Position numbers and translations under genes: made by a program. Below are positions 3,132 to 21,958 of a DNA stretch of 42,102 nucleotides, piece after piece. The notes below the pieces were generated by a model that saw only the letters and a program-made list of their open reading frames with translations, was not told the origin of the DNA and ran no database searches. The stretch covers positions 1 through 42,102 of the forward strand of contig NW_005434556.1 of the NCBI RefSeq assembly GCF_000315625.1. Reading direction: 5' to 3'. Numbering within the stretch: the first letter of the stretch is position 1; each line of letters opens with the position of its first letter. This DNA is from Guillardia theta CCMP2712. Lineage: Eukaryota > Protista > Cryptophyta.

Positions 3132-3418
3132 CTGCCGAAAATAACGGCGCCTGCCGAAAATAACGGCGCCTGCCGAAAATAACGGCGCCTGCCGAAAATA
3201 ACGGCGCCTGCCGAAAATAACGGCGCCTGCCGAAAATAACGGCGCCTGCCGAAAATAACGGCGCCTGCCGAAAATAACGGCGCCTGCCGAAAATAACGGC
3301 GCCTGCCGAAAATAACGGCGCCTGCCGAAAATAACGGCGCCTGCCGAAAATAACGGCGCCTGCCGAAAATAACGGCGCCTGCCGAAAATAACGGCGCCTG
3401 CCGAAAATAACGGCGCCT
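3132..3418. repeat. 19-bp tandem array (CTGCCGAAAATAACGGCGC)15
   Basis: 15 perfect copies at 3132-3416 plus a 2-nt partial unit; shares CTGCC and AAATAA with the array at 1-428. Confidence 0.97.
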
Positions 3419-3470
3419 CCTAAACCCTAAACCCTAAACCCTAAACCCTAAACCCTAAACCCTAAACCCT
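3419..3470. repeat. Interstitial telomeric tract, ~7 CCCTAAA units
   Basis: Read directly; separates the two element copies. Confidence 0.95.
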
Positions 3471-6157
3471 ATTATTATTATTATTATGTGAGTTTATTAG
3501 AATGCTAGAATGTTGCTCGGCCTCGTTGTGGGCTTATGCAATTTGATCCTAGTCTAAAGAGGCGCTCGAGCACTGGGAGTACACGGCCTACAATGCGAAC
3601 CCTGCTTCTGAGGCGTCTTTCTACTCTCTACTTCTGCTGTCTTCTCTTGGCTTCCTCAGCCTCAGTCAGGAGAGTTGCCTCTCCTCACCTTGGCCTTCGG
3701 TCACCACCTACTCTACCTCCATTCAGCTTCCTCAGCCTCAGTCAGAAGAGTTGCCTCTCCTCACCTTGGCCTTCGGTCGCCACCTACTCCTCCTCCATTC
3801 AGCTTCCTCAGCCTCAGTCAGGAGAGTTGCCTCTCCTCACCTTGGCCTTCGGTCGCCTCCACCTTCTCTACTTACCTTGAGCTCAGCTCAAGCTCGGTAC
3901 GGGCTCGCCCCGTCTTCTTCCTCGCCCTCGCCTTGCTCTTCCTCCATGTCTTCCTCTTCTTCGCCATCTTACCTCATCTCCACCCGCAGTCGGTCCTTCT
4001 TGTCCACCTTCAGCGAGCAGGCCAGCACATGCATCTCTGCGAATTTACTCAGTGCTATGAACAGGAAGCTAAGAGATCGACGCTCTATGTCGTCGCTCTC
4101 CGCCTCCTGCTCAAGCTCAGCAGCTGCCGTTGCCCGTGGCGAGAACGCGCTGCCCCTCCTTGCCTTCTTGCTCTCTCCTTGCACGCGAGTCCAGCGCTTG
4201 CTCTGCAGCCACTTCCCCAGCTTCTCCTTGAGAACGTTGCGCCCAACTCCCTGCTCCTCTGGCATCTTCGCCCACTCTCCCAGCGACATGAACTCCAGGC
4301 TCCCCGGAGAGTAGAACGTGTCGTGGAGGTTGCCAACGGCCTTGTCCAGGACCAGCTTGATCGGCTCGCTAGTCCCCGCCTCGTTCAAAGAAGCTGCATC
4401 TTCGATGACTGCTGACAGCTCGCTGACGAGCTGCATGTCCTCTTGGCTTGACGGAGATGCTGCCTCCATTGTGATCCTCTCCAGTTCTGTAAACTCCAGC
4501 CACTCTCCCTCGCTCTCCTCCTGCCGCTGCGCTGCGTCGCTGGTGCCCCGCTGACCAGCCGCCTCAGAGTCAGGCTCCTTGTCGAAGCCGACTGCTTCGA
4601 GCTTGGTTGCTGCGCCTTCGAGATAGAAGGGCAGCTCCTTCATCATGCGTCGAGCATCCTCCGTGGAGCCGAGGAGGATGCATAGCTTGGACCCGTTCCA
4701 GGACTTGGTGTTCAAATCCTCCTCCATGTCGATGCCTTCAACGTTGATCTCGAGCCTGTTAGCGATCTCCAACAAGACTCTCTTGACTCTTGCGATAGAC
4801 GTGTTGCCGCCGTTGCACAGCCCCTCCATCTCCTTCCTCGTGAAGCGACCAGATGCCGCCGTCGACTTGATGATGATCTTGATCTCCTTGCCGTCCTTGC
4901 CGCCTGCCTTCTTCTGCCTCCTTGATGCCTTCTTCAACTTATTTCTGGACACAAAGCGATCAGCTGTCAACTCGACTGCGAGCGCCTCTCTGATCTTCGG
5001 GTCCTCGCTGAACAGAGTCAGGTGTACTCCCTCCATCGCTTCGCTCTCTCGGAAAGCTCGAAATGCTGTATCATTCGCCTCTGGGCAGCTCGAGGAGACG
5101 ATCCACTCCACCTCCCTCTGTCTCCAGATGACGTTGGCCCCTACAGCGATGAAGCCTTTCTGACCTAAGCCTTTGTGGACTTGCTGTCCTGGCGCCCCAG
5201 CGACCAGCATGCCTGCCAGCGGCTGGAGTTGGACCGCTGCAAGGGACTGGCGCAGCAGCTGATAGCGATAGACGGCAGCTATCTCAGCCGTTGTCATGCC
5301 GCCCAAGGTTAGCAGGTGAGTCAGCTCTGCCAAGCTGCCCCCTTTGCCCCAGGGTCCTCTCTTGGCTCGAATCTTGAAAGATCGATCGTGCACGATGCTC
5401 ACATGTACAGCTGTGAACTTGCGACCATCGATCGCGAAGTCCTCTCTTCCCTGCCAGAGCTTCTCCGCTTGTGCATTGCGGAGGAAGGAAACAGTCACCG
5501 GGATCTCCTCAGCACTCGCTATCTCGGGTCTATACGGAGCCTTCCACATGATTGCTTTACTCTCTTGCACTGAGTCTACGATCAGTCCGATCTCTTCAAA
5601 TTTCTTCTTCAGCTTTTCTTCATGGTTGACATACACCGAGGAGATGCCCAGGAGAGTCATGGAGATGAAGGAAGTCACCTCGTTGCCTGCTGAGGCGGTG
5701 TATGTCTCGACCTTCTCCTTCTTGGCTTCTTCAATCTGCTGCATAAACCACTCTCTGGATGCGTCACTCCATCCAGTCATCGCTTCTTGCAGAAGCTCAC
5801 GTCGTGCCTGCTGACATGTCGAGCGGATGGCTTCTGCGATAGCGTCGGGGGTGCATCCCTCCACAGCCTTGCAAGCCTGGGCTGTCCTGCTGTTCGGATA
5901 ACGCTTCGCGAAGCTCTTCACCCTCTCGACGAGATCAGCTTCGAGGACAGAGGCATCCACAAGTCCGCTCTGCGTGTATTGGCATGATCTCCGATACAGC
6001 AGGTTGCGAACATTTTCATCATACTGAAGAACCATACTTAGAAAGCTATTTGAAGTATACAAACCTCTCGCTTGCAGCTTCCTTGGCGCCCTGGCGGCTT
6101 CCCCTACACCTGACGAGGAGCCATGCTGCCGAAAATAACGGCGCCTGCCGAAAATAA
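3471..6157 (-). mobile_element. Telomere-associated element, copy 2 (only ~1.7 copies of the 19-mer)
   Basis: Colinear with copy 1 apart from scattered SNPs; shorter (TAA)n tail at 3471-3487; identical body start (CATGGCTCC on the minus strand). Confidence 0.8.
3969..6062 (-). CDS. ORF1/Gag-like protein, copy 2, with a premature stop removing the 25-aa acidic tail
   Basis: GAA>TAA at 3969-3971 relative to copy 1; otherwise almost identical protein. Confidence 0.65.
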   Translation of the reverse strand: MYTSNSFLSMVLQYDENVRNLLYRRSCQYTQSGLVDASVLEADLVERVKSFAKRYPNSRTAQACKAVEGCTPDAIAEAIRSTCQQARRELLQEAMTGWSDASREWFMQQIEEAKKEKVETYTASAGNEVTSFISMTLLGISSVYVNHEEKLKKKFEEIGLIVDSVQESKAIMWKAPYRPEIASAEEIPVTVSFLRNAQAEKLWQGREDFAIDGRKFTAVHVSIVHDRSFKIRAKRGPWGKGGSLAELTHLLTLGGMTTAEIAAVYRYQLLRQSLAAVQLQPLAGMLVAGAPGQQVHKGLGQKGFIAVGANVIWRQREVEWIVSSSCPEANDTAFRAFRESEAMEGVHLTLFSEDPKIREALAVELTADRFVSRNKLKKASRRQKKAGGKDGKEIKIIIKSTAASGRFTRKEMEGLCNGGNTSIARVKRVLLEIANRLEINVEGIDMEEDLNTKSWNGSKLCILLGSTEDARRMMKELPFYLEGAATKLEAVGFDKEPDSEAAGQRGTSDAAQRQEESEGEWLEFTELERITMEAASPSSQEDMQLVSELSAVIEDAASLNEAGTSEPIKLVLDKAVGNLHDTFYSPGSLEFMSLGEWAKMPEEQGVGRNVLKEKLGKWLQSKRWTRVQGESKKARRGSAFSPRATAAAELEQEAESDDIERRSLSFLFIALSKFAEMHVLACSLKVDKKDRLRVEMR

Positions 6158-15669: not shown

Positions 15670-15768
15670 ATCCTAACAAATCTGCACCCTCACCCGCCGC
15701 CGGACAAGGCAGGCCCGGGCGAGGCTCCGAAACGTCAGGCTGCTTGGCTACAACAGGAGAGCCTAGCA

Positions 15769-15945
15769 CTGTCCCCGTCATCTTGTCCGATGTCTCTGCT
15801 GTGCCCGTCATCTCCGCTGTCCCCGTCATCTCCGATGCCTCCGCTGTCCCCGTCATCTCCGTCATCTCCGATGCCTCCGCTGTCCCCGTCATCTCCGATG
15901 TCTCCGCTGTCCCCGTCATCTCCGATGTCTCCGCTGTCCCCGCTG
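15769..15945 (-). repeat. 27-bp coding minisatellite encoding (GTAETSEMT)n, with 9-bp sub-unit variation
   Basis: CTGTCCCCGTCATCTCCGATGYCTCCG repeats; ORF 15653-15988. Confidence 0.8.
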
Positions 15946-16744
15946 CTGTGTCAGTGATGGACAGCAAGGCGGCTGGCAACATCCGCATGATGGACTCGCT
16001 TCATCCTTGCAGGCGCGCAGGGTGTGACCGTAACAGAACGGGGAAAACTGAACAAGGCAGGCAAGGCACAAGGAAGAGGAAGGAGAAGCATGGCAATGGA
16101 AGGAGGAGCCGGGGCAAGAGCAAGAGGAAGAAGGAGCATGGCGATGGAAGGAGGACAGGTGTGGGGGGGAGCAGCCGGGACAAGAGGGGGGGAAGCAGCT
16201 GGGGCAAGGGGAAGGATGCGGGGGATGGGAGGAAGTCGAAGAGCAGGTTGGGAGACCCAAGGAGCAGGAACAAGACACAACAGGCGCTGATATCGCGTGA
16301 TGACATGAGCAAACAAGCATTTCGCTTTCCAGAGCCGTCGAGTTGGCTGAGGGCTGGGGGCATGTCAACTTTAAAGTGAGGGGGGTGGAGCAGGGGGTGG
16401 AGGGGAAGGTGGAGGGGATATGGAGCTGGTGGGTAGGGGCATATGCGTTTGTGATAGGCAGGTAGGTGGGGTCACTAAGAAACGCAAGGTCAAAAAGGCA
16501 ACAGCCGTTACATTCGTCTTGATTTCAATTTTTTCTTCAATATCTACACCAATCTTTGAAAGATTGATCTATATGTTCAATATCTCCCTTACGATTGAAA
16601 ATGTTTTGCCCACCCTACCCGTACAAATACATCCCCAAATCTCCACCTACCCCGCCCTCTGTTCTCAACCTCCGCAATGCCGTGGAAATGCCCTATTTGC
16701 CAGGCAAGGAGCAGCAGCGATGAGATGCTGTTACCTTGAGTGAC

Positions 16745-19700
16745 ATGCTTGATGATGGAGAAGTTTGCTTTGCTCCCCCGCATCTGTTCCTTCCATCATT
16801 CAACTCCTTTCTTGGCGGCTCCTTCACTTCCTCATCACACTTTTCTTGACCTTCTGACTTGTGTTTCTCCAGATCGTGGTCGATTATAAAACCAACGACA
16901 GCACAAAATGCGTAATTTGAATAGCTCCTAGTAGGCGTCATCTGACTTTGTGTGTTTTACGTTCTGCCGTGAATTGCCATGTTGTTATTCGGAAGGCGGT
17001 AAGCATCAGTCTGTGCAGCATATGCTCGTTCACAGAATAATTGGCTGACATGTATTTTGCAAATTCCTGGGTTTTCCTTGCTTGCATGGACTGAATTCGT
17101 CTTAATAGAGAGTAAGTATCATATGATGCGCTCAGGGAACGATTGGCTGATATTTATTTTGAAAATTCCTGGTTTTTCCTTGCTTGCATGGATTGAATTC
17201 GTCTTCATAGGGAGTAAGTGTCATATCATATGATGAAGTCAGGGGATAATTGGACTGACATGTATTTTTCAAATTCCTGGTTTTTTCTTGTTTGCATGGA
17301 TTAAATTTGTCTTCATAGGATGTAAGTGTCATATCATATGATGCACTCAGGGAACGATTGGCTGACATTTCATTTTGCAAATTTCCTTCGTTTTTTCGCT
17401 CGGATGGATGAAACTTGGGCTTGATAGGCAGTAAGTTGCAAATGCTATGATGCGGTCAGGGGACGATTGGCTGACATGAATGTTTGCGTTTTTTCGGATT
17501 TGCTTCGGATGGGTCGTTAATGTGGCTGGATAGTATGTAAGTAACAAATATTAAATGATGCGCTCAGGGAACGATTGGCTGACATTTATTTTTGCAAATT
17601 CCTGGTTTTTCCTTGCTTGCATGGGTTGAATTCGCCTTCGTAGAAAGTAAGTGTCATATCATATGATTCGGCGCGGTCAGGGAACGATTGGCTGATATTT
17701 ATTTTGAAAATTCCTGGTCCTTGCTTGCATGGATTGAATTCGTCTTCATAGGGAGTAAGTGTCATATCATATGATGAAGTCAGGGGACGATAGGGACTGA
17801 CATGTGGTTTTGCAATTTTGTGGGTTTATCATCGGATTGAATACGAATGGGGCTGGATAGCTGGTAAGTAACAATCTACAAATGTGCGCTCAGGAGATGT
17901 CTCGCTGACATGTGTTTCTGCAATTTCGACATTTCTTGCTGGGATGGACTTTGCTGATGTGTAGTGGGTAAGTATCTTGATCAAAATATGCGGTCAGGGG
18001 ACGATTGGGCTGACATTTGCTTTGCAATTCCTACTCTTTCCTGGCTTGGATGCATGGAATCTGTCTTCAAAGCGTGTAAGTATCATATCTTGTGATGCAC
18101 TAGGGGACAATGGGGACTAAAATCAATCTTGCTTTTGTCTGGCATGTCTTGCTGAATGATGGGCCAACTCCGAATTGGATCTACCAGTGCTGCGTAAGAA
18201 TCGACATCATCGCATATTATCCTGCTGATCTGAGTGTTCTTGTTTTGGCTTCAACGTTCTATTTGAATGCTCATAGAATGTAAGTTCATTGTGTTCCCAA
18301 CAGTCGGTTGGTAGTGGTCTTGATTGTTTTGTGACTGGTTGACTCAGTGCGCCAAGTCTGCAGGATGGTCGCACTACGAGAAGGTATGTGATTGCTTTGA
18401 GTGGAACTTCAGAACCCCCTTATATCGGAGCTGACTGTTGCTGTCGATAGTATGGATGCAGGCATTGCAAGAAACGCCTGCAAGAGAAAGAACAAGCAAG
18501 TAGCAAGCTGGAGGCGCAAGAAGAGAAGATCAAAGAGGAGAAGGAGCGTAGAGAGAGGGAGGAGCAGGAGTGGAGGCAGAAGAAGGAGCAGGAGCGCAAG
18601 GCGAGGGAGAAGCAGGAGCGCAAGCAAAGGGAGGAGCACGACGTTGCTTCCCAGGTTCTCTTCTTGCCATTTCATGATAATCGATGACATGGTGAACCTT
18701 TCTCGTTAGCTTGGTCAAATCCCATCGTTGAACTTCGAGTCCTTTACGGGCCTGCAGCAGATCGGCTCAGGCTCCTTCAAGCTCGTCTACAGGGCTCGGT
18801 GGCAGCAGCCGCATGGCAGCAGCGCTGACGTGGCAATCCAGCGAATCCGAGGCAGCGGACAAACTGGGAGGAGAGAAGAGTTCGAGCAGGAGGTAAAGAT
18901 CTTCCTCCAGCTGGGCCGTCACCCCAACCTCCTTCGCCTCCTCGCCACCAGCATCGAGCCGAGCTCCGGCGACTACTGCCTGGTGACTGAGTTTGCTTCC
19001 AAAGGCTCTCTCGATGTGATCTTGTCCAACTTCGCCGAGAAGGAGGAGACGATGAGTCTGCTGGTGCAGCTGCAAGTGGCGAGGCAGATCTGCGACGGGA
19101 TGGTGCAGCTGTCGCTGCATGAGGTCGTGCATCGGGACCTGGCGGCGAGGAACGTGCTTGTGTTCAGCCTGGACCCGGAGGATCACCTGGCTGTCAGCGT
19201 CAAGATAGCCGACTACGGGCTGTCCATCATGGCCTCGCGCGGGTACGGGGAGAGTAGGGCCGCGAGCGTGAGCACGGCAGGCTCGATGGCTCGACCCGTG
19301 CGGTGGATGGCGCCGGAGAGCATCGAGAGGAGGCAGTACTCGGAGAAGAGCGACGTGTGGGCGTTCGGGGTGACCATGTGGGAGGTCTGGACTTACGGCA
19401 AAGTGCCTTACTGGGCCATCACAGACGATTCGCTTATAGGACCTAAGGTGCTGGAGGGCGACAGGCTCTCTAAACCTGAGACATGTCCTTGGGGATGCTA
19501 CAGAATCATGCAGGAATGCTGGAAGGACAACAAACATGCGCGTCCGAACTTTATTGACCTTCAGAAATTGCTTCAAGGACAACATGACGATGCTCTGCTC
19601 AGTCTCTCCATCCGACGTCAAGACGAAGAGAAAGTAAGCCTTTTCTTCTTTCTTGTATACATCTTTGTGTCGTAAGACCTTGTTCCAGGTGATTGGGAAT

Positions 19701-21150
19701 CCGAGGCCCCAGGATGTACTGGAAGACTATTTTGATGTCAGTTTGAACCCTGAAAGTTCTGGTGAAAACAAGACTCAACACGACTTGGCCCTTTTCTTCG
19801 CAAACTGGATGCCGGAAGCGGAGAGCACGAGGCAATTCAATCCCAACGACGTGAAGGCATTCCTGGATCAAATCGACAAGGGGCAACGCGACGTCGTCAA
19901 GGTCCAACTTGTTGAATCTTTTCTGCGAATGATGAACAGCGCAGATCATCGGCTTCTCCGAATTCCCCTTCACCAACGGAAGGAGACTGAAAGAGGCTGA
20001 CTGGACCATCGAGCGCGAGTACTGGCTGAAGCTCGATCGCATCGACAGGCGTGTGGCTGGGGAGGACGGTTACGTCATCCTGCATGTGCACTACGCGGGG
20101 AAGTGGACCGCCGCGCGGGACAGGCGAGACACGTCGATGATCACGCAGCTGAACATCCGACACACGACTAGGAAGGTGGAGCTCGCGTACCATCGCAAGT
20201 GCGTGGACCTGAACAAGTGGAAGGAAAGGCACGGGAGCGAGGTGCTCCCAAACCTGCCAGCTCAAGGCTGGCGCTGGCGGGAGAATCCGGGCATCTGCAG
20301 GTCCATGCATGGGCTGCTGATGGAAGCAGAGCGTTGCACCAGCTGGGTGCGGTCTCTTGTTATCCCTAAAGCCTTGTCGCTTGCAACTCCAGCAGGAGCA
20401 AGGAAAGCACTGATCATCAGCAACAAGAAGTACCAGCACACGCAGATCAAGGACCTTCCCAATGCCATCATGGACGGCTCGAAGCTTGAATCAGCCCTTA
20501 TGGAGCTGGGGTGGGATGTGGAGTTCGAGGTGAACTTGGGGCTCGAGGACATGGTAAAGGCTGTGAAGGGCTTCAGGGACTCTGTGAGGGAGGACCGCGA
20601 TGCCGCCTTGTTCGCTTTCATCGGGCATGCGGTAGAAGTCAACGGGAAACTTTTCCTCATCCCCAAGGGCTTTCAGGCAGACAGCTTGACGGACGAAGAC
20701 ATGGAGGAAGATCTTCAGAGCTTTGCCCTGCCCTTCAGCAAGGTTCAATCTTTCTTGCGAACTGCAAGGAAGGGACGAAATCCAACTGTTTTCGTACTCG
20801 ACTGCTGTCGCAGCAACGGGCTCTCCGCCTCTGCCTCTCGGTCCTTTGATGTAGGAACAGACAAGCTCAGCGCTCCTGGGATCGACGTGGTCAACTCTTG
20901 CGTTGTCTATTCCACGCAGGCCGGACAGGTAGCACAGGATGGGGAGCCAGGGCGTGGGGGACCTTTCATGTCGGTGTTTGCGGCGAACATCCTTGTAGAG
21001 GACAAGAGTTTGAACGATGTGATGGAAGAGACAAGGAAATCTGTGATGAACAAGACCAACATGGTCCAGATGGCCCCGTTTGTGTCAATGCTTACGGAGG
21101 CCTTCTACTTCAACCCTAGCTGTCGGGTTGATGGTATGAACTTAGCGTGA
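16745..21150 (+). CDS. Multi-exon gene (~893 aa): microexon-encoded Cys-rich/Zn-finger-like N-terminus, coiled coil, TK/TKL kinase, unknown domain, caspase-like (C14) protease
   Basis: Manual splice model with all introns GT-AG and phase 0: 16745-16762, 16873-16911, 13 microexons (16996-18279), 18348-18383, 18451-18654, 18710-19633, 19689-19901, 19945-21150; no in-frame stop. Kinase motifs HRDLAARN, DYG, RWMAPE, SDVWAFG; caspase motifs RKALIISN, FIGHAV, VLDCCR. The first exon is the least certain part. Confidence 0.75.
16996..18279 (+). other. Array of twelve 3-nt exons and one 6-nt exon separated by related ~85-112-nt introns (~108-bp periodicity)
   Basis: AG|NNN|GTAAG at 16996 GCG, 17109 AGA, 17211 GGA, 17319 GAT, 17428 GCA, 17534 TAT, 17644 AAA, 17752 GGA, 17861 CTG, 17965 TGG, 18073 CGT and 18277 AAT; AG|TGCTGC|GTAAG at 18188. 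Confidence 0.8.
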
Positions 21151-21574: not shown

Positions 21575-21958
21575 CATGGAAGTCACTAAATATTAGATGT
21601 TATCTTGAAGGCTGGGCTTGACGAGCGGGTCTGCAGTCTGGGAGGCTTGTTTGGAGCTGGGATCTACCTAGCTGAGAACTCGAGCAAGAGCGACGAGTAC
21701 TGCACGCCAGACAGCCGCGGGATCTGTCGTATGTTTGTGGTGCGAGCTGTGCTGGGATCGTCTTACGAGGCCATGCAAGCGATGAACAATGTACGGCTAC
21801 CACCAGTAATGCCGGGCAGCGACCGCCTGCATGACTCAGTGATTGGTGTGACAAAGGATACGCATCCTTCAGCGTTCTTGGAAAAGTACAGGGAGTTCAT
21901 CGTCTACGACCGGCGACAGACATACCCTGAGTTGCTGGTGGAGTTCAAGAGGGTGTGA
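21575..21958 (+). pseudogene. PARP/ADP-ribosyltransferase catalytic-domain fragment (tankyrase/PARP12-like motifs)
   Basis: HGS at 21575, in-frame TAA at 21587, then GLFGAGIYLAENSSKSDEY, MFVVRAVLG, DSV and YREFIVYDRRQTYPE (H-Y-E motif order). Confidence 0.75.

Follow-up and report, generated by a model that had tools for sequence, protein, structure and literature searches.

The 42-kb stretch of Guillardia theta CCMP2712 DNA that we analyzed (the window) contains what looks like a 108-bp satellite, and the question that this locus raises is whether the satellite is in fact a coding region that is read one codon at a time. The first-pass annotation of the window had proposed that positions 16996-18279 hold an array of twelve 3-nucleotide (nt) exons and one 6-nt exon, each set between an intron end and an intron start (AG|NNN|GTAAG). 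In the window, we found 15 matches to AGNNNGTAAG, as compared to 2.9 ± 1.8 in shuffled sequences, and none of 100 shuffles reached 15. Twelve of the 15 matches lie within 16994-18284 on the + strand, at intervals of 102-113 nt (204 nt where the 6-nt exon intervenes). The 6-nt unit, CAG|TGCTGC|GTAAGA, is at 18185-18199, and the array as a whole has twelve 3-nt spacers and one 6-nt spacer, with the triplets exactly as they had been listed. Tandem Repeats Finder reports a period of 108 bp, 7.2 copies and 75% matches for 17040-17815. The intervals between the triplets are complete intron-like units of 68-112 nt that start with GTAAG(T), mostly have a CTGAC branch-like motif and end in YAG; at the sequence level, the GTAAG(T) donor is present at 13 of 13 microexons. 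We consider it probable that the apparent satellite represents 14 separate spliceosomal introns in a coding region and that the 3-nt (once 6-nt) pieces are real exons, which would contribute to the N-terminal domain of a receptor and be shuffled between genes.

Arrays of this kind are not confined to the window. When we scanned the G. theta assembly (87.1 Mb in 669 contigs) with a pattern of two consecutive array units, we found 154 matches, compared with 3 for the reversed control, at more than 20 loci; the paralogous arrays that the first-pass annotation had suggested looking for are thus present. No stop codon is found among 266 array triplets, where 11.7 (from intron 3-mers) to 20.5 (from positional base frequencies) would be expected, and TAT (29) and TGG (18) are among the commonest triplets. 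A single apparent TAA triplet was a mis-registered TAG|AAA|GTAAGT. In a census of 318 chained donors at 24 loci, the AG-GT spacers of the family are all 3 nt or 6 nt long (TGCTGY, CGAGCG, AGAGGA; ~12 units) and never of a length that is not a multiple of three, and the units in paralogues are related and non-independent, such that both the spacer and the stop-codon statistics overstate significance. The remaining exceptions in the census are 87-nt exons, cases with an AG inside the triplet or unrelated repeats. The family introns vary in length from 86 to 132 nt while the spacers stay multiples of three.

The splice signals of the units are conserved and the triplets are not. Conservation is 90-99% at GTAAGT, at the branch-like CTGAC and at the closing YAG and 40-80% in typical intron columns, whereas the triplet columns carry ~0 bits. 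A CTRAY motif is present in 196 of 223 family introns, and its branch A is ~45 nt downstream of the donor and ~60 nt upstream of the acceptor. Between the branch motif and the 3' splice site we counted 32 AG dinucleotides, as compared to 488 expected from base composition (~15-fold depletion), and this zone is free of AG in 172 of the 196 units. Signals and AG exclusion in each unit would not be maintained by splicing of the whole array from its outermost sites. A hairpin just 3' of the 5' splice site was also considered; it was no better than in shuffled sequence (–3.2 vs –2.9 kcal/mol) and was dropped.

To compare the triplets with their surroundings, we paired 61 cassettes (40 nt, triplet and 40 nt) with their nearest neighbours. 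Flanks differ by 5% and triplets by 32% (~six-fold), with the peak confined to three positions, where the flank value is lowered somewhat by the choice of pairs for flank similarity and the flanks are themselves partly constrained. The triplet differences in these pairs are 29 nonsynonymous versus 2 synonymous. More generally, introns that are 85-95% identical flank triplets that are only 33-61% identical. A non-coding minisatellite would be expected to drift evenly along the unit and to be free of frame or stop-codon constraint, and it is argued against by 0-bit triplets beside splice signals conserved at 90-99%, by the lack of stops and by spacers that come only in multiples of three. These patterns strongly support the view that the triplets would be real in-frame coding exons, and from them we infer that the triplets are included in mRNA.

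What would the spliced array encode? Splicing of the window array in phase 0 gives a stop-free peptide in frame with the exons at 18348-18383 (which ends before GTATGT) and 18451-18654 and with the kinase exon from 18710, and the earlier statement that the frame runs on into a coiled coil and a kinase is borne out by exons that are open through the kinase exon. The predicted product is exon 1 followed by IVVDYKTNDSTKC (exon 2), A R G D A Y K G L W R, CC, N, CAKSAGWSHYEK and YGCRHCKKRL.... If the triplets enter the mRNA, exon 2 is continued by GCGAGAGGAGAT... and the spliced string is the end of exon 2, GCGAGAGGAGATGCATATAAAGGACTGTGGCGTTGCTGCAAT and TGCGCC, of which the array contributes 42 nt (GCG...AAT). 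When 16911 is instead joined directly to 18348, ...AAATGC meets TGCGCC and the product reads ...TKC|CAKS....

Using the spliced peptide as a tblastn query, we found contiguous, stop-free homologues in the G. theta genome on contigs C14, C166, C121, C104 and C205 (L032-L036: G000:C14:155942, C166:41338, C121:75057, C104:185547 and C205:45884). The C166 copy (L033) aligns with the spliced window peptide over residues 1-61 with 41% identity and all Cys columns present, and a single exon encodes its ...KC-A-[20-residue loop]-CCNCAK.HGW.SY.KY.C..CK.R. In the intronless homologues, a loop of 11-36 residues is found at the position of the microexons and is followed by CCNC, CCVC, CCQC or CCIC. A profile of the intronless copies found 56 proteins among 1.84e9 representatives; their sources are the genome of Baffinella (CCMP2293), MMETSP transcripts and contigs from metagenomes or metatranscriptomes, and some of them have the domain in tandem or fused to TIR-like or Roc domains. 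When 44 sequences were aligned, seven Cys columns were invariant and the eighth nearly so, CCNCAK was the consensus and the loop from KC to CC ranged from ~8 to more than 50 residues. The spliced window peptide fits the homologue consensus, ..C..C.I.......D..KC[loop]CCNCAK..GW..Y...AC..CK.R, throughout. The microexons GCG, TGCTGC and AAT correspond to the conserved residues A, CC and N, and the other ten triplets to the variable loop; the direct join from 16911 to 18348 loses one invariant Cys, the N and the whole loop. A zinc-finger-like W-x-C-C-x-C motif had been pointed out in the spliced peptide; its cysteines stand, as they are conserved in the intronless homologues and in the 56 proteins, and its W does not, being a loop residue that is not conserved.

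Taken together, these comparisons suggest that exons 1 and 2, the array and the two exons that follow would encode an N-terminal domain with eight cysteines (8-Cys), CxxC-x13-C-[variable loop]-CCxC-x13-CxxC. Each 3-nt exon would add one residue and the 6-nt exon two; conserved residues of the domain would come from the outer microexons (A at the start, CC and N at the end), and the ten between them would form a hypervariable loop. The spliced peptides match no Pfam family at E≤10, including the RanBP2-type zinc finger, and the AlphaFold2 model of a short homologue (predicted local distance difference test score, 79) has no fold match in PDB (best Foldseek E=4.4, best VIA Z=2.5); with no match in either database, we regard the domain as undescribed. 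The model consists of two β hairpins and then helices, and the loop is the part of the domain with the lowest confidence. Zinc binding is assumed from the eight conserved cysteines.

To see which proteins carry this domain, we examined the paralogous loci. Exon 2 and intron 2 are present as 15 DNA-level copies in the genome, and in an alignment of paralogous loci the arrangement of exon 1, exon 2 and array is found at 16 loci. By Pfam, the downstream parts of the array genes are a single exon of ~1300 amino acids with leucine-rich repeats (LRR), Roc, COR and TIR; a kinase; a kinase and RING; a kinase and PARP; or a caspase. Pfam identifies Roc, COR-A and TIR_2 in L011, L012 and L030, and the LRR was seen by inspection only, which makes these ROCO/NLR-like paralogues; the window gene differs from them in having a kinase, a caspase and a PARP domain. 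The big exon of the ROCO paralogues has CCVC at its start, immediately 3' of the array. In some arrays, the run of microexons is interrupted by an 87-nt exon that is conserved and carries a CxxC-x7-H-x6/7-C motif; in the better-conserved ROCO paralogues (C23, C149, C150, C184, C228 and C308), the arrays are set between exon 2, this 87-nt exon and the CCVC exon. At L015:3887-4100 (G000:C72), the GCG microexon is fused in frame through 9 nt (GTAAGCTTA, V-S-L) to the 87-nt CCHC exon, and this looks like the in-frame remnant of a deleted intron. In diverged paralogues (L013 and the second L019 gene), the introns have drifted and the 3-nt exons and the ...|TGCTGT|AAT|TG[CT]GCC... ending are retained. 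The NCBI models of the ROCO paralogues P0001-P0003 (GUITHDRAFT_121310, _108245 and _116126) lack exons 1 and 2 as well as the microexon arrays, which leaves the N-terminal domain unannotated; their start is an internal Met or an invented short exon.

The Cys-rich N-terminus is joined to TIR, Roc-COR, kinase, caspase, PARP and RING effectors, and for this reason we read the family as a set of cytosolic innate-immunity or cell-death switches. The N-terminus (MPWKCPICQIVVD...) has, by inspection, no hydrophobic leader and hence no signal peptide. In the proposed scheme, the 8-Cys domain would head a subtelomeric multigene family with cell-death or immune-type effectors at the C-terminus (LRR-Roc-COR-TIR, kinase, caspase, PARP or RING) and would be the variable recognition module of NLR-like receptors, with the loop setting specificity. 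A receptor function is suggested by this domain content, and the idea of a sensor domain in the first-pass annotation fits the architectures that we found. Plant NLR LRRs, lamprey VLR cassettes and subtelomeric var/VSG families offer functional analogies. Like the array family, such hypervariable receptor families are multigene and subtelomeric, fuse a variable part to conserved TIR, kinase or caspase-type effectors, and show cassette-like exchange and an excess of amino-acid-changing differences in the variable part. In contrast to them, the unit of variation in the arrays is one codon with its intron halves, and the immune role rests on domain content. If this reading is true, the model cryptophyte has a previously unannotated, fast-evolving receptor family with an undescribed 8-Cys domain, for which gene models start downstream of the arrays.

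To identify how the arrays vary, we compared units within and between loci. Of 71 genome matches to one intron unit, 70 fall within arrays of this gene family, where successive matches are often separated by exactly 3 nt. An identical 30-mer adjoining the triplet predicts the same triplet in 62% of cases, as compared to a background of 5%, and the far side of the intron has no predictive value. The best-matching cassettes are found at differing positions in different paralogues, and array length differs from ~5 to 20 units between near-identical paralogues. L011 (G000:C23) and L021 (G000:C149) share 99.5% identity across 3 kb of the effector exon, and their loops are unrelated in number and sequence (A-T-G-T-H-P-S-V/.../G-G-R in L011, A-R/.../E-G-L-R-G-S-R-R-I-Y in L021), which would imply very recent turnover of the array. 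Many paralogues are located 4-16 kb from contig ends, with telomere-type CCCTAAA runs and perfect 19-bp arrays nearby (also at L015:2508-2542 and L022:3448-3475), and the gene family appears to be subtelomeric.

These comparisons point to unequal recombination and gene conversion, both inside a subtelomeric array and from one such array to another and with breakpoints in the introns, combined with selection for amino-acid change, as the probable source of variation. In the germline, arrays would grow, shrink and be reshuffled by such events; the exchanged cassette would be the 3' half of one intron, the codon and the 5' half of the next, and the homogeneous introns would supply the homology while selection favours amino-acid change at the codon. 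If so, conservation is inverted, with conserved introns and hypervariable exons, which suggests introns kept as scaffolds for the shuffling of single codons. We tentatively put forward, with more doubt than confidence, a codon-cassette system in which each loop residue has its own exon and the introns are recombination handles in the germline and possibly also somatically skippable units, allowing an algal immune sensor to be varied residue by residue.

Schistosoma micro-exon genes (MEGs), which have exons of ~6-81 nt, secreted products and variation documented at the RNA level, are the closest known system in logic. In both MEGs and the arrays, long tandem runs of symmetric, very short exons (multiples of 3 nt) lie between conventional exons and form a variable region; both are multigene families that are thought to face another organism, and in both the frame-neutral gain, loss or skipping of exons is a route to variation. 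In contrast to the exons of MEGs, the array exons are single codons, up to ~20 in a row. MEG products are secreted, whereas those of the arrays begin with MPWKC..., have no evident signal peptide and carry cytosolic effector domains. The array introns, unlike those of MEGs, form a single homogeneous family with higher conservation than the exons, and array variation is known from genes alone. In exon size the arrays resemble the isolated 3-nt microexons with canonical splice sites that are known from Drosophila homothorax (PMC7392893), plants (PMC8831610) and RPS24 (PMC12207440) and are commonly missed by annotation; for neural microexons, an unusually long spacing between branch point and 3' splice site is reported (PMC12871342). 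The isolated animal and plant 3-nt microexons are single, deeply conserved and have at most two or three neighbours, whereas the arrays have 5-20 hypervariable ones in a unicellular alga. The papers on microexons that we found describe single microexons or at most three neighbours, and our literature search returned no description of tandem or single-codon microexon arrays, of this G. theta family or of Guillardia introners. By analogy, the arrays may be an extreme form of the micro-exon-gene theme. If the triplets are spliced in, these are to our knowledge the longest runs of minimal exons, with up to ~20 consecutive one-codon exons and ~270 in the family.

Could the triplets be real exons that are used combinatorially? 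Symmetric exons would then be skipped in subsets to give many loop variants per gene (up to the 2^13 isoforms that had been proposed for the window). Very short exons are generally prone to skipping, schistosome MEGs use the same subset-skipping logic, and since every array exon is a multiple of 3 nt, any subset keeps the frame. However, a near-consensus GTAAGT, a branch motif and an AG-free zone in each unit make for efficient rather than weak sites and, if anything, favour constitutive inclusion; loss of the CC or N exon would destroy invariant residues; and the demonstrable diversity is germline variation among paralogues. We thus find this usage unlikely, if conceivable.

Several observations weigh against the splicing of the triplets into an expressed mRNA, besides the biases in the unit and cassette statistics given above. 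None of 18 sampled words of the exon at 18451-18654 was found in probable RNA runs, in a run index that samples sparsely and represents few culture conditions (runs X12-15 look genomic, as the share of sampled words roughly tracks the contig total relative to the 87-Mb genome), so that expression of the window gene in culture may be low or absent. Among the transcript-derived and annotated proteins of the collections that we searched, none has an N-terminus encoded by an array, and NCBI gene models of paralogues start inside the big exon, downstream of the arrays. Recognition of 3' and 5' splice sites at the same time is sterically awkward when they are just 3 nt apart. In the proposed scheme, splicing would proceed by intron definition, unit by unit, aided by the branch point ~60 nt 5' of each 3' splice site and by the AG-free zone. 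If this is true, the splicing machinery of this alga handles 3' and 5' splice sites 3 nt apart repeatedly, and the arrays would be a natural system in which to study intron definition and the order in which introns are removed.

Other transcript-side searches had a similar outcome. A search with the ROCO exon found only NCBI models and Hanusia phi open reading frames that start at or after the Met of MCQHCK. The spliced L011 peptide and the window coiled-coil exon had no protein-database match, and a gapped pattern that only spliced cDNA could match found nothing in metagenome contigs. P0025, a candidate for the protein of the window gene, was rejected, its source not being G. theta. In another reading, the mechanism of the family is real and the window copy (C118) is a silent or decaying subtelomeric copy that would act as a reservoir of cassettes and not as an expressed gene. 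This reading is favoured by its position ~13 kb from telomere repeats and beside retroelement remnants, by the lack of sampled words in probable RNA runs and by the lack of a database protein with the coiled-coil exon. In the window, however, every exon from the ATG exon through the kinase exon reads without a stop and in frame, the splice signals are intact and the conserved residues are all present, and the run index is thin in sampling and in culture conditions, which together make a silent copy improbable.

A further reading concerns only the origin of the introns and is compatible with coding microexons: instead of arising by duplication of units made up of a codon and an intron, the introns could be mobile introner elements that were inserted independently between the codons of a once contiguous loop exon. 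Introners and introner-like elements are many near-identical introns of uniform length in one genome (PMC4457414), there are intronless homologues whose loops have a similar length and composition, and nearly identical introns flank unrelated triplets. Introners, however, scatter through unrelated genes, whereas the array intron family is confined to the tandem arrays of one gene family and is not scattered through other genes; because 70 of 71 genome matches lie within arrays, it is not a dispersed introner. Insertion at each successive phase-0 codon boundary would be extraordinary, array length differs from ~5 to 20 units between near-identical paralogues, and the 30 intron bases beside the triplet co-vary with it, as expected of cassette exchange. 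Independent insertion is thus very improbable.

At recursive splice sites (ratchet points), GT follows AG with no exon in between, and the mRNA retains nothing of them. In both ratchet points and the arrays, the AG of a 3' splice site and GTAAGT are almost adjacent and the arrangement is repeated over a long interval; in the arrays, 3 nt always intervene and behave as codons. That the array is a duplicated intron or minisatellite, removed as one intron (16912-18347) or by recursive splicing with the triplets never in mRNA, would suit the 108-bp tandem periodicity, the adjoining AG and GT that resemble ratchet points, the annotated gene models that ignore the arrays and the indirect basis of triplet inclusion, but it is very improbable, as ratchet points have a 0-nt exon and not a 3-nt one, the direct join (...TKC|CAKS...) is without one invariant Cys, the N and the loop that are found in every intronless homologue, and the absence of stops, the 3n-only spacers, the 3-nt substitution hot spot, the AG-exclusion zone of each unit and the retention of GCG, TGCTGC and AAT across diverged paralogues are left unexplained.

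With the triplets read as coding exons, the window gene can be followed from its start codon along the + strand. Exon 1 (16677..16703, 27 nt) has the start codon and 8 codons (MPWKCPICQ) with the first CxxC knuckle of the domain; it is kept in 16 paralogues, and its ATG is the first past an upstream in-frame stop. Intron 1 (16704..16872) is of the GC-AG type (CAG|GCAAGG ... CTCCAG), and the GCAAGG donor is present in nearly all 16 paralogues, with GTAAAA at the same position in L013. Exon 2 (16873..16911, 39 nt) is coding in the frame of the first-pass annotation, because the paralogues differ by synonymous third-position changes (ATC/ATA, ACA/ACG, AAA/AAG); its codons 5-6 are variable. Intron 2 (16912..16995, 84 nt) has its own sequence, outside the array intron family, and is conserved among paralogues.

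The array begins with the microexon GCG (16996..16998), which would encode the conserved small residue (Ala) that follows KC; GCG is found in this slot in most paralogues, and intronless homologues have A or S. Ten family introns of 99-110 nt then alternate with nine loop microexons (16999..18072): AGA at 17109-11, GGA at 17211-13, GAT at 17319-21, GCA at 17428-30, TAT at 17534-36, AAA at 17644-46, GGA at 17752-54, CTG at 17861-63 and TGG at 17965-67. The last loop residue (Arg) would come from CGT (18073..18075). An intron of 112 nt (18076..18187), which is conserved in L019, precedes the 6-nt microexon TGCTGC (18188..18193) for the two invariant cysteines of the domain; CAG|TGCTG[CT]|GTAAG is present in 10 arrays, and CC is invariant in 44 homologues. 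An 83-nt intron (18194..18276) separates CC from the microexon AAT (18277..18279), the Asn of the CCNC motif; AAT is in this slot in the window gene, L025, L019 (both genes) and L013, and N is the majority residue in the homologues. After a 68-nt intron (18280..18347), the exon CAKSAGWSHYEK (18348..18383) aligns with CAK..GW..Y of the intronless homologues, and the exon at 18451..18654 has the last CxxC of the domain (YGCRHCKKRL) and a Glu/Lys-rich coiled-coil stretch.

Downstream, the kinase exon (18710..19633) matches Pfam PK_Tyr_Ser-Thr (E=2.5e-37) in the residues encoded by 18710-19345. Also on the + strand, Pfam finds a caspase (Peptidase_C14) domain in an open frame at 20053..21150, which is probably part of the same gene as the array, and a PARP catalytic domain in an open frame at 21605..21958, which is possibly part of it; in the paralogue L029, kinase and PARP are in one open frame.

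Upstream of the gene, the window starts with CCCTAAA telomere repeats, and telomere-type runs and perfect 19-bp arrays take up 1-471 and 3132-3471. The region at 15679-16625 consists of 27/36/63-bp repeats and a Lys/Arg/Glu-rich open frame, and it is 75-92% shared with the upstream regions of several paralogues (L021, L024, L027-L029); it may be a promoter, a 5' UTR or a gene of its own. On the minus strand of L031, in the first ~900 nt of the reverse complement (G000:C269:~42.5-43.4 kb), we found another tandem array, with 10 units of ~88 bp. These units read ...AG-CACA-GT[GA]AGCTTGTTG, with 4 nt between AG and GT, and lie outside the 3-nt family.

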